From assembly GCA_965112155.1 (NCBI GenBank), contig OZ218113.1: a stretch of 64,000 nt of DNA, one strand, 5' to 3'. The translations under genes and the position numbers were made by a program. The notes below the pieces were generated by a model. That model was not told the origin of the DNA and did no database searches. It saw only the letters and a list, made by a program, of their open reading frames with translations. Below, piece after piece: positions 11,825 through 63,436 of the stretch (positions are counted from its first letter, which is position 1; every line of letters starts with the position of its first letter). Origin of the DNA: Podarcis liolepis. Taxonomy: Eukaryota.

Positions 11825-11972
11825 NNNNNNNNNNNNNNNNNNNNNNNNNNNNNNNNNNNNNNNNNNNNNNNNNNNNNNNNNNNNNNNNNNNNNNNNNNNN
11901 NNNNNNNNNNNNNNNNNNNNNNNNNNNNNNNNNNNNNNNNNNNNNNNNNNNNNNNNNNNNNNNNNNNNNNNN
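11825..11972. other. assembly gap (N run)
   Basis: 148 N bases. Confidence 1.
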
Positions 11973-14686: not shown

Positions 14687-15209
14687 TATACCTCTAAACC
14701 CCAGAGGGGCTACAGGATCTGGGGGCAGTTTTGGGAAGGAGCAAGGCAAGCAAGCTTAAAGTTCATCACGATAAGACGGAGGTGCTGTGATTTGGGGATA
14801 AATTGGAGGTGCCTCTTTTGCAGCAGTGTCCTGGTGCGGTGTTATGTACTAAGCTTGGATCCTAGAACAATAGGCAAGTAGGATCCTAGAATGCAACAAC
14901 GGATTGGCAGGTGTCCTTCCTCATGAAATCCTAATCAGTGAGCAATAAAGGATGGAAAACCACGTCTATCAGTGTCCAGGAGATCTCTGGAATGCTTTAC
15001 CTGGCGGCCGTGTGGCAAAGGTTAAGAACGTAAGGAGAACCTGCTGGATCAGGCCAAAAGGGGCACATTGAGTCCAGCTTCCTGATCTCACATTGGCCAA
15101 CCAGATGCCCATTATGTGAAATCCAGAAGCAGAATTCGAGCACAAGAGCATTCTCCCCTCCTGCGGCTTCCAGAGGCATTATTGCCTCCGACTGTGGAGG
15201 CAGAGAATA

Positions 15210-16170
15210 CCGTATTTTTCGCCCCATAAGACGCACCGGCCCATAAGACGCACCTAGATTTTTGGGGGGGAAATAAAGGAAAAAAAATTTATTTCCCCCC
15301 CAGGTGCGCTGTGCTACACCAGGAGCTTGGGGCGTGCGGAGCTCAGCGCGCCCCAAGCTTCTGCGTGCAGGCAAGGTCTCCGCTAGCGTGGGAGAGCCGG
15401 GCGCCTCTCCCAGGGCTAGCGGACTCCTGCGCTAATCCAGAAGCTTGGGGCAAGCTGAGGTCAGCGCGCCCCAAGCTTCTGCGTGCCGGCAAGCAGTCCG
15501 CTAGCCCTGGGAGAGCCGCGGGGCTCTCCCAGGGCTAGCGGATCGCTGCGCTATACCAGGAGCTTGGGGCGTGCTGAGCTCAGTGCGCCCCAAGCTTCTA
15601 GGTGCGCGCAAGCAGTCCGCTGCCGCCCCAAGCCTGGCGCACCCGGCAGGAGGTCCCACCGGGTGCGCGAGGCTTGGGGCGGCAGCGGACTGCTTGCGCG
15701 CACCTAGAAGCTAGCAGTCCGCTGCCGCCCCAAGCCTGGCGCACCCGGTGGGACCTCCTGCCGGGTGCGCCAGGCTTGGGGCGGCAGCGGACTGCTTGCG
15801 CGCACCTAGAAGCTAGAAGTCCGCTGCCGCCCCAAGCCTGGCGCACCCGGTGGGACCTCCTGCCGGGTGCGCCAGGCTTGGGGCGGCAGCGGACTGCTTG
15901 CGCGCACCTAGAAGCTAGAAGTCCGCTGCCGCCCCAAGCCTGGCGCACCCGGTGGGACCTCCTGCCGGGTGCGCCAGGCTTGGGGCGGCAGCGGACTGCT
16001 AGCTTCTAGGTGCGCGCAAGCAGTCCGCTGCCGCCCCAAGCCTCGCGCACCCGGTGGGACCTCCTGCCGAGGGCGCAAGGCTTGCAGGCATTCGCCCCAT
16101 AAGACGCACCCCCGATTTCCTCTTCATTTTTGGAGAGGAAAAAGTGCGTCTTATGGGGCGAAAAATACGG
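15210..16170. mobile_element. young Tc1/mariner (CCGTATTT-type) non-autonomous element with an internal GC-rich palindrome array
   Basis: Perfect 27-bp TIR ccgtatttttcgccccataagacgcac with TA TSD; inserted into a CR1 3' fragment. Confidence 0.9.
15590..16070. repeat. 102-bp tandem units, each a ~35-bp-arm inverted repeat
   Basis: cacctagaagctag recurs at ~15701, 15803 and 15905. The arm gcagtccgctgccgccccaagcctggcgcacccgg and its reverse complement occur in each unit. Confidence 0.9.
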
Positions 16171-16802
16171 TAGTCATTATGGCTAGTAGCCATTGATAGC
16201 CTACTCTGCCATGATCATAGAATAGGAGCCGCTTAACCTAGAATTGCCGTATGTCCGGAATTTCCCAGACATTGCTGGGATTTGGCTGTTGGAAACAGTG
16301 CCCGGGAGGAAATCGCTTCAATGTGCGGGAAAATTTGGATGTATGGCAACCCATACGTATGGAGAATTTCCTAAAAAATAGCTCACAAACGTCTCTCTTT
16401 TTTTGAGATCTTGCTCAACAGCTTTGGCAAAAAATAAAAAGAAAAAAGCTCAACAACTGTCTGGATCTTGACTTTTCACCCTTCTTAACTACCCATTTAG
16501 TAGACCTTGCCTTAGCTTGATGAAGGGTTAAGCCGCTCCAACAGCTGCCAAGGTTGGCAGATCCCACTCCAGCCAAAGGAACCAACAAAATGACCCGTTT
16601 CTGTATCCCTTATCCATCTAATCTACAATGTGATGCATCTGGAGGCCATCACACAATGGATCACCATCACTATTGTCACCCCCGCATATAACAGAGGCCA
16701 AATGCGGCTCCTAGGCCTCTCTATATGGCCCTAGCTCTAGGGTACACTCCCTTATCAGGTGATGCCCTTCTGCCCAGCCATATCCCCCATCACCCATGGT
16801 CT

Positions 16803-24504: not shown

Positions 24505-25131
24505 TCTCCCCAGCTACTACCATACTTCTGAGTATGGTAGTAGCTGGGGAGATTTCACCCCCCACCCGCCAATGTTCAGCTCCACTCCCTGGCTCCTTGT
24601 GACGTCACGCAATGTCAAGATGTCACATCGGAGCCCCTCAATCAACTTGGAAAGATGGCGCCTCTGCTTCTGCGGGAGGTGAAATTAGCAGGAGGCACCC
24701 CTCTGCCAATCTTAACACGCAGGATGGGCTACAGGGAAGGAGGTGGCCTTTCGAATATTTGAGGTCTGAGTCGTTTAGGGCTTCAGACACTCACATGAGC
24801 ACCTTGAAGAATGGAGCCTGGAAACAAACTGGCAGTCAGTGTGGCTGTTTTAGTACAAGGGTTCTATGATTTCTAAAGGGAAACCCAGCCAATACTCTAC
24901 CCACTGCATCTGGGGCCAGTTGAAGTTCCCAAGTAATCTTCAAGGGCAGCTCCATGTGGAGCTAAGGCCCTTCTGTGGGCCATGCAGGCCTTTCCCCTTG
25001 GGCTCATCCACACCATCGCAGTTGCTCTTTCTGGTCCAGTTCTTGCCTCTGGAAAGCCTACAAGCAATTCAATATAAGAATCGCTTCTTGGCCTTTTGGC
25101 TAAGACCAAGTCTGAGAATAATAGCCTAGAC

Positions 25132-25453
25132 CAGGGGTCTGCAAACCGCGGCTCCGGAGCCGCATGTGGCTCTTTTACACCTTTACCGCGGCTCCGGGGC
25201 GGATACTAGCGAGGGGAGGAGGCGCATTGTGCGCCCCGACACTCCCCACTGTGGCAGGCGCTGTACTGGCTGTGACGTTGCATGGGAGCGGTGCGTGCGT
25301 TAGTCCCGACGTCACCTTCCCGCCGGCTGTCAGATCGCGGCTCTGGAGATATATTTGTTTTAAATGTCGCAATGGTTTTGCGGCTCCCAGGTTTTTTCCC
25401 CTTCGGAAACGGGTCCAAGTGGCTCTTTTCGTCTTAAAGGTTGCAGACCCCTG
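25132..25453. mobile_element. hAT MITE (young, CpG-rich)
   Basis: TIR caggggtctgcaa with 8-bp TSD GCCTAGAC. Confidence 0.9.
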
Positions 25454-26469: not shown

Positions 26470-27749
26470 GTTTGGATAAACCCTTATGGCAATTTATGCT
26501 GGCATAGGAGTCTTCCTTATATACAAATCTAGACCTTTTTGCTGAGGTCTCAGAGATAGAAGACAGAAGATAAGAGTGGTGGGGATGGTTGGATAAATGG
26601 GGTTTTGCAGATATCCAGTAAATAGGCTAAATTTGATTGAGACTAGCTCAATGGACTTTAAGAGAAACAGAGGGCAAAGGCGTTATGTGGCAAGTCAATT
26701 CTCTGTCAGTGTTTTGACAGGGTGTGGGGGTGTGGAGTTGCAGGAAACTGAGGCAAGAGCGAGGCAATGTTGGGAGTCGCATCCCTTATGTAAGAAAGTC
26801 ACACCCCTTATGTAACCCAGGGGTCACTGTGCTTTGCAGGAGCACCGTGTGATATAGGAATTGGTCACCTCCCCTTTGGAACTCCCTCCCACTAGACATT
26901 TAGACAGGCAGCGGCTCTGTATGCCTTTTCAATGTTAGGAAGACAGGAAGCTGTCTCATACCGAGTCAGACTATTGGTCTAGCTTGCTCCGTATTGTCTT
27001 CACCGCAGGAGTATTTCCCAGCCCTACCAGGAGATGCCTTTGAGGACTGAACTAGGGACCGAAGCAGATGCGCTGCCACTGAGCCACAGGTCTTCCTCTT
27101 TCAACAATCCCTTTAAGTGTCTTTATTCCGCATCTGTGCTGAAATCATTTTAAACTGTGCTTATATGCAGAGTTGTTTCTAAAGACTTGTACAGCACTAA
27201 CTTGCTGCCTGATTGAGGTTGAAAAACCATGTGTGCTGCCTTGAGCTCCTAGAGGATAGGTGGACTATAAATGCAAATGAGTCAATAAATAAAGTTGAAT
27301 TTTAGTACATTTCCTTTTCAAAAACCAAGGGAAATACAGTAAGAAAAAGCTGCTGCTTTCAGACTGGAGTTAAGGCTATCTCTGCAAAGCTGATAAAATT
27401 AGAAGCTAAGGCTGATGCTTAAACTACCAGAGGTGCCCCATGATTAGTTATGGATGTGGTACAATGTCACATATTGGGCTTTCATGTAACTTGTGCTCCA
27501 TGTGCCCCCACTGACCCCACTTCCTTGGTCTTTCAGGCCTTAATCTGGATAGAGAGGATGGGGTGCTTGGCTGAGACCAGGACGCCCTCACACAAACACA
27601 TTGTTTTGGTCTTCTATTTCCTCAGGAAACACCTGAGCCTTCCATATTTGCCCAAAGAACCCTCCTGTGAGCTGACTCCATCAACTTGCCAGCTTTGCCT
27701 TGTTCTTTCAGTAAAGTCATGACAAACATTTCCAGTCATTTGAGTTGCA

Positions 27750-27755
27750 TTTATT
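27750..27755 (-). terminator. polyadenylation signal AATAAA
   Basis: Plus-strand tttatt, about 280 nt into the predicted terminal exon. Confidence 0.45.
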
Positions 27756-28008
27756 ATTCATATAAAAATAATTCGGTACATTCCCCCCTTTTAAACCACA
27801 CACCCCGCCTACAACGAAGGCAAGGTCTACAAAAATAATGACACTCATAAGCCTCTTTGCTTCAATAGCGCTGCATTTCTGAAGTCGTCATAGTCCTGGT
27901 CCAATTAAAAAGGACAAAAAGAAACAGGCTTGGCCATCATGAAGCACATGCAAGAACATCACAGGAATCGTTTTCAGCAGTTGTGCTGCAAGAATCTGCT
28001 GCAGAATC

Positions 28009-28033
28009 GCTTTGGTCATTCTATACTGCATCT
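28009..28033 (-). promoter_or_regulatory. extended miR-9-5p target site (seed plus 3' pairing)
   Basis: RNA 5'-AGAUGCAGUAUAGAAUGACCAAAGC-3' pairs miR-9-5p nt 2-21 with 17 Watson-Crick pairs, 3 G:U pairs and two single-A bulges. Confidence 0.6.
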
Positions 28034-30587
28034 ACCTGAGGGAGACAAGGAGGAAGGGGGGGAGGCAAGAGAAAGAGATTTAAAAACAAATTTATGTAAC
28101 AGACTGTTCATTTCGGTTTGGTGCCCCTGCCACCAAATTCAAAGCCACCTCTAGGCCATACCACTTTTGTTTCAGATAACAACACTGAGGGAGGTTAAGC
28201 CCTTACTCCGCTCGTGTGTGTATCATGCTGGATGCAGCCAGTGGACCATTTATCGAAAAGGGTTGGGAGCTTCCAGGACTCTCAGTTTGGCACTTGTGAC
28301 ACGTCCAAGCCCCACACACCCTTTCCCCAGGCCACTAGTCTTGCTTCAAACTCTCCTTCAAAGTTTTCCCCTGTTCATTCATCTTCCTTCAAAGATTTTG
28401 CCTGTGAACTCTGATAATGCAACTTGCTAGTCTGGATGGGAGGACAGAGAGGGATGTGTGAGTGAGTTTAGAAGCTACCGTTACCAAGGTAACATTTCCG
28501 TGAGAACTTAGGGAGAGCCTGCTGGCTATCAGGCCAATGGCCCATTTAGTCCAGCATCCTGTTCTCACAATGGTCAACGAGATGTCTGTGGGAAACCTGC
28601 AAACAGGATTTGAGCACCAGAGCCCTCTCCCCTTCTATGGCTTCCCAAGAACTGGTATTCAAGAATCCATGGCAAGAATCAATTTTAGAATTTCTCCAAG
28701 TTAATATGGAATCCCAGGGGGGTAGGATGCAGACGAGAAGATACATATTGGAACAACGAAGTTAGATGAATGGGTGAAACCATTTCAGTCCTTGTATGAA
28801 GGCCTCCAGGCTTGAATCATAAGTATCTGGCAGGCCACAAATGATCCAGATGGTACTTTGATCCCATCTAGACTTTCCACAATTGCACACCTGTATCCCA
28901 CACTAAAATCCTAGCCCAGCTGTAAACATCTACTATTGATATTTCTATCTAGAGGAAAGCAGAATGGCAAAGACTGACCTATGTCTTTGCCATCCTGGTG
29001 TCCTCCAGACGGTTTTAGACCACAACTCCCATCAGCCCAGCCAGCACGGCTTTAGGATGCAGGGTCTTATGGGAGCTGAAGTCCAAAACATCTGGAGGAT
29101 GCTGAGGTGGCAAAGGGTATGGTCGGCAGTGACAGAACTGTGTCCTCTCAGGAGCAAATGCATTTGCACCTAACTAGCCACATCCTAGCCTTATTTATTA
29201 CTTTTTTCAAATTAAATGACATTATTTTCTTATTTAAAAAACAAACAAACAGGGGAGAACACACACACACACGTCCCATGCCTCCCTTATAAAATTGCCA
29301 AGGTTTTTACCAAAAGGCACACGGAGTTGGAAGCAGGTGGTACAAACCAGTCGAGATCCCCAAAGCAGAAGCATGTGGTCAGATTAAAAAGCTCAATCCC
29401 CCCACCCAGCCTTTGATGGAGGGCAAATCCGAACAATTATAATGAAGGGGCTTATTTCTCAGACTCTTTCTGGCTGCAGTCATTGGAACGAGCAACACTT
29501 AATAATTCCCTTTCATGGACAACCTGCATATAATTGTGATGTCTTGTTTCTCTATCAGCTGGTGATGAGCCTGTCTTTACGGGGAGGGAAGTGCCTGCAA
29601 AGTGGGGTGGCCACCGAGATACTGTTGGGCTAAAACTGCCTCTGTTCCTGCCCACAGACAAAGCTGGTTGGGGCTGGAGGGTGTAAGGAGTTCAAGAGCA
29701 GCTGGAGGACCATAGATTCTCCACCTCTGTAGGTTTGCAAAGGCACAGCAGGAAAGGAAGTGTCCACAGAGGCATGTTCCTGTTGGTTGAGGTCATATTC
29801 TGCCCCCACTACATGGCAACGCTTTCCTTCCCAGGAGTTAAGGAGATGCTACTGATACAGGAAGAGTACACCAGGGTTCCTCAAGGTTTCTAAACTTGCC
29901 TTTGGTTTCCAGGACAAAGAGCAGGTTTTGCCCACTTTTGCCCAGTTCTCCCAGATTGCAGTCTTGGTCCCTCACTACTGAATGGGGAGCCATCAACCAC
30001 TGGGCAAAATCCTACCTTCATCAGAACAGGACATATGAATTGAAATCCTTCTTCACACAGCATATAATTTAAACTATGGAACTTGCTCCCACGGGAAGCA
30101 GTGGTGGCCATCAACTTGGCTGGCTTTAAAAGAGGATTAGACAAATTCATGCAGAAGAAGGGTGTCAGTGGCTGCTAGCCCTCTCGACCTAACCGACTTC
30201 ACAGGATTGTTGTGAGGTTAAAATGGAGAAGGGGAAGAACTGTATAGGCCACCTTGAGCTCTTTGGGAAAAGGGTGGGGGTATGTGTATTAATTAAATGC
30301 TTGATGAACATGGTTCTGACCATTTTTCATGCGTGCCTGTCTCGACGCTTTAGATTAATGTGGACTTAATGTGGACTTTCTTAAAAAGTCACCACCAAAA
30401 TTCATCAGCAGTGGAGATTCCTCCTAATACACACACACAAGTGCAAAGCAATTCCCCCAAATATAATGCATCTTTGTACGTTACAACAGGAGCAACTGAA
30501 GAGCAGGTAAACCCTTGAACCATCTTCCTGGTTGGCTTCTGCTGCTACTCTCCCTGAATTGGAAGGGACTTCAAGGGTCCTCTAGTC

Positions 30588-30725
30588 CAGCGGTTCTCAA
30601 CCTGTGGGTCCCCAGATGTTGTTGGACTACAACTCCCATCATCACTGAGCTCTGGCCTTGCTAGCTAGGGGTGATGGGAGTTGTAGTTCAACAACATCTG
30701 GGGACCCACAGGTTGAGAAAGGCTG
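30588..30725. mobile_element. hAT fold-back MITE with SPIN-like termini
   Basis: cagcggttctcaacctgtgggtc... with TSD CTCTAGTC; inserted in a CR1 tail. Confidence 0.88.
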
Positions 30726-33289
30726 CTCTAGTCCAAGCCCCTGCAGATGCAGGAACCACAACTAACAAATCCCTGATAAAAGGCCACCCAACCTCTGTTG
30801 TAAAACCTCCAATTCCACTGAAAGGAGAGATGCCAGACAATCCCTGGAAGACCCACCCACCACCGATTTACAGCAGCTGGCCTTGACACTGGACTTCTGG
30901 GTTGTTTGGGGAGATGAGAAGGGGGAGATGGGTTAATGTGAATGGTCTGGGGGTTGATCCTTAGATGTTATGTTTCTCTGCTGGTAAGTAGGTGGGAGCA
31001 TTGCTGTGTTTATTGTTGCTAATATTTTCTATTACTTTTTTGGGAGGGGGCTGGTATTTTGTTTCTGTTTTCCGAATACGTTGCATGCAATGTGATACTT
31101 CCCTTTTTATTGTTTTAGATCTTATGCACTGTAAATCACTTGGAGACCCTTGCGTGACAATAAACAAATAAGTTGAGTTAATAAACAAAACAACAAATTA
31201 CCATACTTGGGATGGAGGGCTTCGTTGCAAAATTCATAGAAGTGCGAATTTGGGTGGGGGATGGCTGCATTTCTGGTTTTTATGCATTCGTTCAGAAAGT
31301 GCAAATTTTGTAGGATTGCCTTTGAATGTAAACTGAACTTAGTTTCTCCTCCCACCCCTGAGCAGAAGAGGGAGTCCCAAAGGGTGGAAGGAGGCAGGAG
31401 GAGCCCCAGCTGAAATCTTGCCCTTCTGGTTGCGGAAGAAAATCCATGATGTTCAACTGATCAGTCAAATGCCTATAATTCTTCATTCCAGTGTATCGTG
31501 TGGTATTAAATGCTAGGAATTGGGTGCATGGAGTCAAAATGAAAAAAGGAAACAATTCCCCAATCCTTTAAAACCCCAGCCTTTGCCAGGCGTTATCTGG
31601 AGAGGTGGCGAATCAGGCTGAGGAGGAGTGGATAGGGAGAAGGTCCCCACTGGCAACATTGCCATTTATACAACCAAGGTCTCAATGAGGCTTTCATAAT
31701 AAACAGGCCTCGGTGAAAACAGCCCCAAGTGCTTGCAAGGGCTGCCATTATATTATCTCCTGCAGTTTGTACACAGTGGTCATTACAGATTCATTTGCTT
31801 TCCCAAGGCGGCAGGCGCAGAAGTCTCCCTCTCTTTGTCCCTTCTCCGTTTTCTCCCCACCTCGCAAGCCCTCCGTGCTAACCAACTCCCTCTCTCTCTC
31901 TCTCTCTCTCCCCCTTATTTATTTTTATATTAGCATCTTATTTACAGTTTGACAGAGTTAACAGTATCCCTTGCAAACCATTCTGTTGGCTTTAATCGGG
32001 GGAATAATAGGCGCTGTCTGGAGATGAATAGAGTTTAGGGGGCCAATTGTTCCGCAAAATGGAAGCAGTGGGGGTAATTTATTTATGTGGGCACATGTCG
32101 GGAGGAGAATAGGCCGGGGGGATCAGTATGCAGGCGAGGATACGGACGGAATTGAGGGGGGGAGGGGGGAAAACCCAGAAAACCCTGAGCAGAACAGCCA
32201 ACAATCCACTCTTCACCCCTCCTCACCCACCCTTGAGAACCAAAGGCCTCCGGTGGCCATGAACTTGAGGGGAATCTAAATGTCCCATTCCCAGGCCCTC
32301 TGTACTTCTTGGGGCCACGATCAGTCCCGCCTGTGGGGATGTAGGCCTCAGGCTCCAGATGGGCCCACTGAAGGCCGTCCCCACCTCCCCGCATAGTGAT
32401 AGACAACATGACATGTCCCTTAGCAACCGTACAGTAGCCAGGGCGCAGCAGGGGTCTGGGAAGAGAGGCAGAGCCCTCACGAAAATACAGGAGGGACCCA
32501 GACAATGGCGCAAACCCCTGTCATAAATTACACGGCAGCTACAACAGCCGAGCCATCTCCTCCAACATCTTGGGCAAAGATGTTCTGGCCATTCATGCAC
32601 TAGTGGCATGGGTGTTTTTTACAGGAGAGCCTCAACGCTCTTTCCTCTTCACTTTCTCTCCCCTTCTCTTGTAATGCTAAAACCCAACGGGGACATCCAA
32701 ATGAAGCTGGATGTGGGAAGGTTCAGGACCAAAAAAACCAGGAAGAGCTTCTACAGTTAATCTGTGGGATTCAGTGACACAGGATGTAGTTGTAAAGCAA
32801 CTCAAGACAGCTTTACAAGGGGATTAGACAAATGGGTGGAGGGTGATTCTGCCAAGGGTTCTTTAGCTGTGATTTCTGCATTGCAGGGGGTTCGGCTAGA
32901 TGACCCTTTGGATCCCTTCCAACTCTACAATTCTGAGTTTATCTATAAGGCTATCCATGGCTACTAGCCATGATGGCTGTGCACTACCTCCATGGCTACC
33001 TCCAGAGACAAGTTGTTGAGAATCACAAGTGGAGAGGGCGCTGCTGTTGCAATCAGGTCCTGCCTATGGGCTTGCCATGGACATCTGGTTGGCCAGTGTG
33101 GGAAGCTGGATGCTGGACTAGATGAGCCTTTGGGCCAGTAGCCAGGTCTTCCTATGTTCTCATTTCCCAGCCCCACGAGGACTTACAGAATGATGTCACA
33201 TCGATTTGGTGGGCAGCGGAAGCCATGACACTTACACCACTTTGAAATCATCCCAAATATGCAATGCGGATGCAGCATTCCAAATCTTA

Positions 33290-36122: not shown

Positions 36123-37261
36123 CTGTGGGAGAGATGGGAAGCAGAGGGGTCCTTCCATCAGCTTTCTGAAAGCCCAGCTCCATCAGGCACTTCCTAGACC
36201 AGCTGGTCATTTCTGGAACAGCCATTTAGAAATGGATGCCCAAGTTGTGATTCTGATCTTCCTCTTCCCTCCTTGTCCCTTTTCCCTTGTGTGTCATGTC
36301 TTTTAATTGTAGGGATGGTCTTGTTTTGTTCGTATGTAAAAAGCTGTGGGAGCCTTTTTGGCTGAAGAGTGAGCTGCAAATGCTCCGACTAAAATAAATA
36401 TCTCTCTTGTGTGAAGGTGCTATGGACACAAATGGACCCAGATGTCTCCTGAAGCTGCTCCAGAAGGTCCCATCAGAGGTCCTTCTTTCCTGCTCATGCC
36501 CTGCACTGACTGGCAGCAGCTCTCCATGATTTCAGGCAGGAACCTCTCACAGCCCTACCTGGAGATTCCAGGGACTGAATTTGGGGACTTCTGCATTCAA
36601 GGCAGATGCTCTGCCACTGAGCTAAGCCTCCCCCCCCACCTCCCTGTTTCAGAACATTTGGAAGGGCATAGTTATTTTATTTGATAAAGAGAAATGGATT
36701 TTAAAAAATAAAGAACAAATTGATAGCCTTCCTTCTCTCCCTCCCTCCCCCCCTCTCTCTCTGTGTGTGTTAGGGATGGGCAAATCTGTCACTGCTGGTT
36801 TCTTTCAGTTCCCCATTTTGCCATTCTTAAATTCAGTTCTCAGTTCCACATCTGCTTGATATATATGTGTGTGTGCCTCCATCCTGGCTGGTGGGGGCTT
36901 ATTTTGAATAGATTTGCATAGGACTGGCAATTCAAGTCTGAGTAAGCTATAATGAAAAGTGAAGCAGGTGATCTTTATTCCAGATTAGTTAATCCAGAAT
37001 TCTTCTGCTCCTGGCTCGTGGCCTTCAACTAGATAATCCTGGAGAGAATGAACCCCTCAAGAGAAAAAGGGTTGCCTAGCCCTGCTCCAGAAGATGCCAC
37101 CATGGCCAACACAGTCTTCTGAGGAAAAGGGCATCACACCAGCACAGCTGAAGCAGTAAATAGCTTCCAGCCTAGATAATGTTTAGATTAAGGTCTCAGC
37201 TGCAACATTTCCCGTTCACCTGTAGTAATGGAGGAAGGCCTTCTAACAGCAAACACACTGA

Positions 37262-57390: not shown

Positions 57391-58371
57391 TGCCTATGAC
57401 AGAAGCACTTTCCCCAATGGGATCTCTGGTCAAAGCCGACTAATGGAGGCAAATCAAGCTAGCTCATTTCTCAACTCCAAAACCTATGGGAGAGAACTGT
57501 GCCGCTGTGGCAATGATCACTAACAGGCCTGCTACCAGAAATGTGCTTCTTGTTGTGGTAGCTAAGGAGAAGAGCCTGAAAAGCAAATACATACTAAACC
57601 CATCATGTTCTATGTTTTAGCATTTACTTACAGTGCAGTCTCATAGAACTGTAGAGTCTAGTTTAACCCCCTGCAATGGAGAAATCACAGCTAAATAATC
57701 TCACACATGTCTATAATGATATTAGATAGGCATGTGCACTGCAAAGTGTTTGGCACTTACTTAAGACTTGGTTCACACAGGCTTTCCATGATGCCTCTCT
57801 CATCACGCATTCGAGTCAATGCGTTATGATGTTTTATTGGCATTTTGTGGATTTTATTCCATGCACCACTTTGGAATTCTCCATGATATGTGGAATCCTA
57901 GTAATTGCTATGCTGTGCTCCCTACAGATGTCCCACCCATTACACCTTTGCAATGTAGCTTCCATGGAACATGAAAAGTCAGCAAAAGGGGTCTGTCAGT
58001 GGGGGAGGAAGCCAGGGAGCTCCCTCCCAGCCCCCGGCCACAGCAGTCTGAAAAGCAACGGCAAAGCAAGATCCAGCCACACAACAGCATCAAACATCAG
58101 GCCTCGTGCGGCCGTTACTCCACAGCTGCATCTAAGCACAGCTACTCCAAGAATGAAAATGAAATGGGTTTGGGAATTCAGAATGCTTACCTCCAGCTTC
58201 TAGCATCCAGAAATGAGACTTTCTCTTTCTTTCTGTTTCCACGTCTTCTATTCACTGCATGAGCATGAAGAGGGCTTTTGTTTCGGTCTCTGTTTTCTTA
58301 GAGATCTTCCCTTTTGCTTTTCTAAAAGTCTTCTCTCTTCTCCTCCTCAGGCGTGTAATGGGGTTATTTTT

Positions 58372-58393
58372 ACTTTCGGTTATCTAGCTTTAT
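58372..58393 (-). ncRNA. miR-9-3p: mature miR-9-3p AUAAAGCUAGAUAACCGAAAGU
   Basis: Plus-strand actttcggttatctagctttat is the exact reverse complement. Confidence 0.97.
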
Positions 58394-58409
58394 GAAGACT
58401 TGACCCCAC

Positions 58410-58432
58410 TCATACAGCTAGATAACCAAAGA
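58410..58432 (-). ncRNA. miR-9-5p: mature miR-9-5p UCUUUGGUUAUCUAGCUGUAUGA
   Basis: Plus-strand tcatacagctagataaccaaaga is the exact reverse complement. Confidence 0.98.
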
Positions 58433-58608
58433 TAACAACCAACCCCGGCTATCTACTTCACCAGCAAGGGCAGCAGCACCAGGAGGAGGAACAGACCTTC
58501 CTTTCTCCTCCAGGTCTTTCTTTCTGGGGTCTCTTGGTTGGGGGAAAAAAAGGAAGGGGATAAATGTATTAACACATAAACCCATCCATTTGCCACCATT
58601 TCATTTTT

Positions 58609-60400: not shown

Positions 60401-61162
60401 CTCTTAAGCTATCCCTCTGTAGGAGACAGTCCCCGTTTCCTGGGGTCCCTATCTCGGGGTGCATGTCTTCAGCCAGCTAGTCTTTACCTACTTCCTGCGG
60501 TTTCTAGAAGCTAAAATCGCAGACCCAGCAGCCTTGATCCTCCTTTCTCAGCGCTGCCTATCCAGGTACGGGAAAGCTCTGCCAGCTCTTTTGAACCAAG
60601 GACCCACAGACCCGGGACTAGAGGAATCCATCGGTTAAATCACGAACCTTGCGCAGGATTCAGGCTAACTCTTGGGAGGAGCGGGATGAAGGCAGAGAAG
60701 CCTTTTCCCGAGCGCGCAAGGGCGGCCCTCTTTTCGCCTGTGAGAGTGCAATCTAATTTATAGTTATATTTATACCATATATTCTCAAGCCCCTCTCCAT
60801 CCTTTGCGGACCCCAGGACGGCGGGGAGGGGAGGCATGAACCATAGCAAAAAGAAATTTTGTTTTTTTTTAATCGTGCAAAAATAGATTTCCAAACAATT
60901 AATAGAGCCTCTGTCAAAACGTTGCAGAGTGTGAAGATCTGGGCAGGAGGGAAGCTCCCTCTTCCTGGCGCTGCAACGGGATCCTCGCCATGCCTGCTCC
61001 CAAGTAAACCGTATCAAATTCAGCGGGGCTATAGGATCACTTTCGCGGCCCAAACGGAGGCAGCCTTAGCTAGAAAATTCGCAGATCCGCCACCGCAAAG
61101 AAATGAAACGAAACGAAACCCGCCACCCGGGTCCCAGCAAGAAACTCGCTTCTTGAACTTAC

Positions 61163-61490
61163 GCGGACGGAGGGAAAGCCGCGCGCAGCCTTCGCTCCGG
61201 TGAAGATGGGCGTCGGATCCCGCTGCGCATGGGGGTCCCAGGCACCACGACCCCCACCCAGACCCCCGCCCTCCTTTTCCTTTCTCCTCCTCCGCCCAGA
61301 AAGGCACGATCCCCCGAAGAGCAAGGCTGGCTGCGGCCGAGCGAGAGCGCGGATTCTGCGCGCCCTGCGGAGCGGGAGAGGGACCCGCGCAGCTCCGGCC
61401 TCTCTGGTGAGCACTTTCCCTGCTGCCCGCAGCTCCTCCGTTGAGAGAAAAAGGCAGGAGGCGGAGGAGCGAACGACCCATTCATTCTTT
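61163..61490 (-). other. predicted non-coding exon 1 (TSS approximate)
   Basis: Minus-strand donor CGC|GTAAGT at 61162, downstream of the CCAAT/CRE. Confidence 0.55.
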
Positions 61491-61519
61491 CACACTCGCG
61501 CCCCACTCGCCCGCTGCCG

Positions 61520-61543
61520 ATTGGCTCCCTGAGGCTGACGTCA
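61520..61543 (-). promoter_or_regulatory. CCAAT box (61520-61524) and full CRE TGACGTCA (61536-61543)
   Basis: ccgATTGGctccctgaggcTGACGTCAccc inside the CpG island, just upstream of the predicted first exon. Confidence 0.7.
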
Positions 61544-62790
61544 CCCGTCCTGATTCTCTCGCCTTCCTCCTCCCCCCCCCGCTCCGCAATCTCTCGCGCT
61601 CTCTCCCTCCGCAGCTGCCCCTCCAGTTCCTCAATGGAGCGAGAGAGGGCCGTAAATATTAGAGTAGAGCGCAGCATCCGAAAGGAAGCGCATTGTCGAG
61701 CGTCTAGGAAAAGAGGAGTCCATTCTTATATACCGTGTCAGACCACAGGGACACCTCGGCTCGGGACTGTGTGTGGACAGCACAGCGAGGCTTTCCTTTG
61801 CTTATTGCATTTCTGTATCGCTTCGTTTTCTCCAACGAGCTCAAGGTAGCACACCTGGTTCTGCCCCACCTCCTCATTTGATCCCCACAACAACCCTGCG
61901 ATGTAGGTTAGGCTGAGAGGGAGTGATTGGCCCAAGGGGCGAGGGTTTGGACCCTAGTCTCCCAGGTCCTAACACTAATCCTAAACACTCTGCCACAAGC
62001 AGCCTTCAGAAAAACCCTTTGCCATCACTGGCTGCCCATTGGCTAGGTTCAATGTGCTGGTTTGGGCGCACAACGCCATATACGGTTTGGGACCCCAGGA
62101 TGCCCGAGAGATCGCCTCACCCCTTCTATACTCTCCTGATCACTGCTCTCCGCCGGTGAGGGCCTCTTGCAGAATCCATCTCACCTAGAGATCTGCTCTC
62201 TGCACGATGTAGGAACCGGGCCTTGGTGGTGGTGGCTTCCTAACCCTTTGAAACTATATTAGACAGGCGCCATCTCCGTTGTATTTCCAGCGCCTCCTGA
62301 AAACTTTCCTCTTTCAACAAGCCGTTTAAATCTAGAGCTTTCTCAATCAGCACTGGAAATTGTTTGGAATATAATGTTGCTTTCCGCCGCCCTGGGCTCC
62401 TAGCGGAGAAAAGGCGGGGTACAGATTCAATGAATTACTTTGAATTGGAGGTCGGACCTGGGGACTTTTCCAGGCAAAGCAGGCGCTCTAGTCCATATGT
62501 TTCTAACCAAAAAGCAAATTTAAATAGGAATCTGCCCTATTCTGCGTCAGACTGTTGGTCCACCTAACGACATTCCTCGTGATGAGAGCCAGCGTGGTGT
62601 AATGCCGGGTTGCTAGGACCTAGCAGACCAGGGTTCAAATCCCCACATGGCCATGAAACCCCTGGGTTTGACCTTTGGCTAGCCCCAGTCTCTCAGCCTA
62701 GCCTACCTCACAGGGATGCTGTGGGGATTAAAGAGAGCGGGGGAACCATGTACTCCACTCCTTGGGACAAAAAGGTGGGGTATAAATGTA

Positions 62791-63292: not shown

Positions 63293-63436
63293 AATCACAG
63301 AATTGTACAGTTGGCAGGGACCACGAGGGTCATCTAATTCCATCCCATGCAATGCAGGACTCTTTTTGCCCAACGTGGGGCTCGAACCAACCACCCTGAG
63401 ATTAAAAGTCTCATACTCTACCGACTGAGCTGCTCC
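63293..63436 (-). mobile_element. tRNA-Lys-derived SINE with CR1-like tail (Squam2-type)
   Basis: Minus-strand agctcagtcggtagagtatgagacttttaatctcaggg...gagccccacgttgggc is fused directly to a CR1 3' end. Confidence 0.75.

Follow-up and report, generated by a model that had tools for sequence, protein, structure and literature searches.

The mir-9 locus

A search of 64,000 nt of the Podarcis liolepis genome (assembly GCA_965112155.1, contig OZ218113.1; this whole stretch is referred to below as the window) against Rfam identified a full-length mir-9 precursor, scoring above the gathering threshold of its family, on the minus strand. Both mature arms could be read off the hairpin (Table 1). The plus strand of the same segment also exceeded the mir-9 gathering score (62.0 versus 58.6 bits), because the precursor is near-palindromic. 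The sequences flanking the hairpin appear to resemble those of the mir-9-1 paralogue in miRBase. In mammals, miR-9-1 is intronic and lies in MIR9-1HG (formerly C1orf61), a host gene that now carries a non-coding gene name.

A CpG island present upstream of the hairpin is plausible as the promoter of the host gene, and is listed in Table 1 as a candidate. Further CpG islands were found at 15001-16200 and 25001-25400; the latter lies about 2.3 kb past the polyadenylation site of the terminal exon described below and could be part of an adjacent gene. The ten longest open reading frames of the window gave no match in a Pfam search, apart from one below threshold. Two tRNA-like matches on the minus strand (36560-36631, 47.9 bits; 63375-63431, 33.9 bits) contain several non-canonical pairs, and are probably the heads of tRNA-derived SINEs rather than functional tRNA genes. 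Positions 11825-11972 consist of 148 N, corresponding either to an assembly gap or to masked sequence.

Table 1. Features associated with the mir-9 locus and the miR-9-5p complementary site (window coordinates)
Feature	Coordinates	Strand	Basis or remarks
mir-9 precursor hairpin	58364-58441	-	Rfam RF00237, 80.8 bits versus a gathering score of 58.6
miR-9-5p	58410-58432	-	mature arm read off the hairpin
miR-9-3p	58372-58393	-	mature arm read off the hairpin
CpG island, candidate host promoter	61001-61800	.	GC 0.60-0.67, CpG observed/expected 0.84-1.05; ~2.6 kb upstream of the hairpin
Splice acceptor and pyrimidine tract	28036-28080	-	AG at 28037-28036; both RNA-like contigs break at 28036
Terminal exon, ~300 nt	27736-28035	-	RNA-like contigs of two species
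miR-9-5p complementary site	28009-28033 (paired part 28010-28031)	-	RNAduplex
Seed match to miR-9-5p nt 2-8 (7mer-m8)	28010-28016	-	perfect pairing
AATAAA polyadenylation signal	27750-27755	-	14 nt upstream of the X3 contig end at 27736

A spliced, polyadenylated terminal exon downstream of the hairpin

Two small sequencing runs (X1 and X3) behave like RNA, while a further one (X8) is a DNA run. In X3, positions 27736-28036 are covered by a contig of 306 nt with a depth of 187, which no other non-repeat contig of this run reaches in the stretch examined. The X3 contigs upstream of the exon (28007-33100) have depths of 5-24, at least 5 kb being covered at this low, intron-like level, and coverage is zero below 27594, that is, downstream of the polyadenylation site. 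The unspliced X3 contig shares exactly 30 nt (28007-28036) with the exon contig, the overlap expected of a k=31 assembly graph that branches into spliced and unspliced forms at the junction. The X1 contig (487 nt) follows the window over 27784-28036; beyond this, 229 nt of it have no match in 27200-33100, which points to an upstream exon located farther off, outside that interval. On the genomic side, a pyrimidine tract of about 40 nt precedes the acceptor AG. Since the contigs break at 28036, and the X3 contig ends shortly after an AATAAA signal, the segment is a real terminal exon, spliced and polyadenylated. The original prediction had placed a strong acceptor 4 nt before a miR-9-5p complementary site and had named the junction at 28035 as one to look for in brain RNA-seq. 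The acceptor was borne out: the exon starts at 28035, and the RNA-like contigs of the two species show the splice break at the adjoining position.

The depth of the X8 DNA run over the exon is about 40, and the exon is therefore single-copy and lies outside repeats. Each of the three frames is closed by a stop codon in the 20 nt that open the exon, ahead of the seed match for miR-9-5p, which thus lies outside any reading frame. The minus-strand RNA that contains the exon is apparently non-coding, and is most probably the miR-9-1 host transcript, in which case the exon and the hairpin would belong to one transcription unit. An ORF of 47 codons starting with ATG (27888-28031, minus strand) begins within the miR-9 site, directly after an in-frame TAG. 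Its product would be rather hydrophobic and had no homologue in the protein collection searched; the ORF is probably fortuitous.

The intronic depth in X3 climbs towards the terminal exon, from ~5-7 at 31.4-33.1 kb to 24 at 28.0-28.3 kb. This slope is opposite to that usually left by co-transcriptional splicing. It might reflect an internal start or an isoform that retains the intron, per-contig depth being a poor measure. Very high-copy interspersed repeats occur in the intron upstream of the exon, at 28382-28578, 28973-29169, 29958-30154, 30549-30745 and 32716-33100. In a DNA run from a relative, the summed contig depth reached up to ~1.15 million for the copy at 30549-30745, and the copies are linked by numerous joints of the 'opposite strand' and 'skip' types. 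The repeats have the look of SINE-like elements present in both orientations.

The exon was compared among three relatives that are 1-7% diverged. In X3 (about 7% diverged), 13 listed substitutions and four indels fall in the exon, all within 27774-27984; the X3 exon record totals 18 substitutions, the other five lying near contig ends at positions that are not listed. The adjacent intron contig of X3 shows 20 substitutions in 302 nt, so that, overall, the exon and the neighbouring intron change at the same pace (about 7% each). No change is listed for 27985-28081 in any of the three relatives, although the part around 28018-28025 is at most 20 nt from the ends of both X3 contigs, where changes may be unobservable. 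The seed match is unchanged in all three, these being only 1-7% diverged, and at the divergence of X3 only one or two changes would be expected within the whole site. Conservation is therefore uninformative here, because the change-free block straddles the acceptor, where splicing signals can account for it, and because the relatives are too close. The X1 contig, although it bears the organism label of the best-matching DNA runs, differs from the window at seven positions, plus five gap letters, in 253 nt (27784-28036). The differences at 27810, 27879 and 27955 are common to one or both of the other relatives; either the window contains lineage-specific alleles or X1 derives from a distinct population or species.

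Pairing of the exon with miR-9-5p

The original prediction had described an extended site for miR-9-5p at the start of the exon, and both its sequence and its pairing were confirmed in every detail. According to RNAduplex, the minus-strand RNA pairs with nt 2-21 of miR-9-5p through 17 Watson-Crick and three G:U pairs, the latter at miRNA nt 9, 15 and 19. Two single target nucleotides are bulged (A at 28020, after nt 11, and A at 28024, after nt 14), and nt 1, 22 and 23 of the miRNA are unpaired. The energy of the duplex is -22.1 kcal/mol, compared with -36.7 kcal/mol for the perfect complement. Nt 1 of miR-9-5p is faced by C rather than A, which makes the seed match a 7mer-m8 and not an 8mer; it is flanked on its 3′ side by CG and is predicted to be open, with an unpaired probability of 0.70 in the folded exon. 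Watson-Crick pairs in the 3′ part of the miRNA form runs of at most 3 bp (nt 12-14 and nt 16-18), or 7 bp (nt 15-21) when two G:U pairs are counted, and nt 11-23 form a duplex of -10.8 kcal/mol (ViennaRNA duplexfold). The site and the hairpin share a strand, with the site 30.3 kb farther downstream. The three internal substitutions had been read as wobble-preserving, of the type that selection on pairing would leave. This argument was set aside as largely circular: such an alignment is recognised only where pairing persists, so that its selection is biased from the start.

When synthetic 7mer-m8 sites were placed in contexts drawn from the window, 0.7% of them reached -22.1 kcal/mol or lower, and the 3′ part of the site (nt 11-23) paired better than 99.3% of random 17-mers. 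The window contains six seed matches on the minus strand and seven on the plus strand (one of these being the hairpin's own antisense), and the site in the exon is the best non-self miR-9-5p site in it. An equally strong site was found somewhere in the window for 5.4% of permuted miRNAs if either strand was allowed, and for 2.9% if only the minus strand was considered (n=1500). A 7mer-m8 inside the 300-nt exon was obtained with 2.5% of 1500 permuted miRNAs. The combination of a 7mer-m8 in the exon with equally strong pairing was obtained with none of the 1500, a post hoc figure, as the hypothesis was framed after the site had been seen; the analytic expectation for this joint event, likewise post hoc, is about 1-2 in 10,000. 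The pairing alone is thus unremarkable for 64 kb (3-5% of permutations), and what is improbable is its sense-strand position in a verified terminal exon.

These figures bear directly on the possibility that a chance seed match and chance additional pairing happen to lie in the last exon, neither selected nor effective, for instance if the RNA stays in the nucleus, is scarce or is absent where miR-9 is expressed. This is a close rival of the interpretation favoured below, if a somewhat less likely one. The look-elsewhere effect is real, and such a site is found in the window by 3-5% of permuted miRNAs; random seed sites can pair equally well, albeit seldom, and the exon evolves at the rate of its intron. 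An occasional chance case is also expected given that a genome contains some hundreds of miRNA loci. However, the joint event was absent from all the permutations and is rare analytically, the seed region is predicted to be accessible, and in X3 no non-repeat contig is deeper than that of the exon.

The remaining minus-strand seed matches (2920, 4896, 19480, 29906 and 35813) fall outside the exon. The exon itself includes a single 7mer or 6mer site, and the sponge (ceRNA) function that had been suggested for it was rejected on this ground.

Cleavage had also been suggested. A site sliced by AGO2 opposite nt 10-11 (around 28018/28019), or else a decayed relic of the 3p arm of a duplicated mir-9, would account for some of the features of the duplex: nt 10-11 form Watson-Crick pairs, pairing spans nt 2-21, and the RNA of any such site is necessarily similar to the 3p arm. 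Nevertheless, pairing across nt 9-12 is interrupted by the G:U at nt 9 and by the bulged A between nt 11 and 12, beside the scissile phosphate, which makes the site a poor substrate for slicing. As for a relic, an Rfam scan of 27600-28400 at E ≤10 returned a spurious SmY match only, and no mir-9 similarity. Moreover, neither strand of the site region forms a hairpin or folds better than shuffled sequences (z = +0.8 and +0.4), and a relic of a second mir-9 hairpin was rejected on both counts. Taken together, we consider slicing or a relic to be the least probable of the explanations discussed.

Possible roles of the site

The site had been proposed to be a trigger of target-directed miRNA degradation (TDMD) encoded by the miRNA's own locus. 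The spliced host RNA would bind AGO-miR-9-5p, recruit ZSWIM8 and bring about the destruction of miR-9-5p, thereby coupling production to decay. The great abundance of miR-9 and its origin from three loci count against such a role. In validated TDMD triggers, the seed is paired, mostly as an 8mer; a central unpaired loop of 3-11 nt disrupts nt 9-10; at least six contiguous 3′ base pairs are present in 12 of 13 cases; the 3′ duplex energy ranges from -9.6 to -17.1 kcal/mol; and the site lies in non-coding sequence (PMC10899785). The Podarcis site shares with them its location in the non-coding part of an expressed RNA and its perfect pairing over nt 2-8, though as a 7mer-m8. Its 3′ energy falls within their range, at the weak end, the published values having been obtained with a different program (PMC10899785) from the ViennaRNA calculation used here, and its 3′ pairing surpasses that of nearly all random 17-mers. 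In contrast, the central loop is absent from the RNAduplex structure, as nt 9 (G:U), 10 and 11 are all paired. The 3′ helix contains no more than three consecutive Watson-Crick pairs, and its stretch of seven depends on two G:U pairs, whereas triggers have at least six contiguous pairs in all but one case. The unpaired nt 22-23, and the CG that follows the 7mer-m8, also depart from the trigger architecture. Of the features of the duplex that would distinguish a trigger, therefore, only the 3′ energy is in the trigger range, and the proposal was not supported.

In its favour, the trigger rules rest on few cases, and centrally paired targets can sometimes induce TDMD (Buhagiar and Kleaveland 2024, PMC10899785). 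In two mouse surveys of Zswim8 knockouts, miR-9 is absent from the sensitive miRNAs named in the main text, and one TDMD study includes miR-9-5p as a control that is not affected, although these mammalian data leave room for a lineage-specific case. No paper that ties miR-9-5p of vertebrates to ZSWIM8 sensitivity, or that places a miR-9-5p site in the host RNA, turned up in the literature searched. On balance, a self-encoded TDMD trigger is improbable.

'Seed plus supplementary pairing' fits the geometry of the duplex better than either TDMD or slicing. The interpretation that we tentatively prefer, at somewhat less than an even chance, is that of an ordinary high-affinity miR-9 site, through which the spliced host RNA would be targeted by its own miRNA. 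In cells rich in miR-9, and provided that the host RNA is co-expressed there, AGO-miR-9 would bind the mature host RNA via the seed, aided by the pairing of nt 12-21, and would promote its deadenylation and decay. An intronic miRNA would thereby exert first-order negative feedback on its own host RNA, with a lower level of the spliced host RNA and an unchanged level of miR-9. Several observations favour this interpretation: the sense-strand terminal exon is real in two species, the 5 kb upstream of it have intron-like coverage, the seed match is predicted to be open, it lies outside a reading frame, and no permuted miRNA (n=1500) has an equally strong site in the exon. A documented class of intronic miRNAs targets the host transcript itself (about 20% by prediction, few by experiment), with validated cases in miR-26b/ctdsp2 and miR-338-3p/AATK, although CLASH-type data contain few such events (2 of 193, 2 of 121 and 17 of 188). 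Against ordinary targeting, the exon changes at the rate of the adjacent intron, the host RNA may be confined to the nucleus, beyond the reach of AGO, and the extended 3′ pairing (p ~0.007) is left unexplained, as it would have to be a coincidence. The more novel interpretations are therefore kept alive by the extended pairing.

Among these, the host lncRNA might hold AGO-miR-9 without its being destroyed, acting as a decoy or as a stabiliser. There is a precedent in MIR200CHG, which is reported to bind and stabilise its own intronic miR-200c (Nat Commun 2023, PMC10709323), and extended pairing raises affinity (PMC10899785). However, the exon offers a single site, and one site per RNA is an unfavourable stoichiometry against a highly abundant brain miRNA; in addition, the contact reported for MIR200CHG is in a non-seed region, while here the seed is fully engaged. 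Protective or titrating binding is, accordingly, very unlikely.

A broader proposal is that of a lineage-specific arrangement in which selection maintains, in the spliced miR-9-1 host RNA, an extended site governing how stable miR-9-5p is, be it as a ZSWIM8 trigger of atypical, centrally paired geometry or through protective binding. We give this little credence, and the present evidence does not favour a regulator of miR-9 over an ordinary target. If true, every time the host is transcribed, the miRNA would be supplied together with its regulator. In vertebrate neurogenesis, miR-9 acts as a master regulator whose dose and timing matter, and a site in the host RNA would provide it with a built-in loop. 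No TDMD trigger is known to lie within a miRNA's own host RNA; a site acting on miR-9 itself would be the first trigger in a miRNA's own transcription unit, and its central pairing would put the TDMD rules to the test. An ordinary site would merely tune a non-coding host RNA and would be of modest importance.

With respect to known systems, the arrangement recalls that of MIR9-1HG, in that flanks presumably of the mir-9-1 type are combined with a spliced terminal exon downstream on the same strand, an apparent likeness of layout. As in miR-26b/ctdsp2, miR-338-3p/AATK and miR-93-3p/MCM7, the hairpin and the seed site are on the same strand and the site is in a downstream, non-coding terminal exon. 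Unlike the hosts of those intronic miRNAs, the host here is apparently a non-coding RNA, with no protein output to be tuned; the pairing is also far more extensive than in usual sites, and the site only presumably shares its transcription unit with the hairpin. The site resembles TDMD triggers such as Cyrano/miR-7, NREP/miR-29b, Serpine1/miR-30 and BCL2L11/miR-221/222 in being a single, non-coding site with the seed and most of the 3′ half paired, but differs from them in having no central loop and in a 3′ helix that one bulge and two G:U pairs interrupt. The claim that such a configuration had not been described holds in part: no paper was found on a miR-9 site in its host RNA, whereas host-targeting miRNAs are known and MIR200CHG/miR-200c has been published (PMC10709323). 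The latter is a host lncRNA with a site for the miRNA of its own intron, the stability of which it is claimed to affect, and in the first of these respects it is the counterpart of the Podarcis exon; it differs in that its contact is reported to be non-seed and protective, while the seed is fully paired here, and in the miRNA, the locus and the taxon concerned (PMC10709323).
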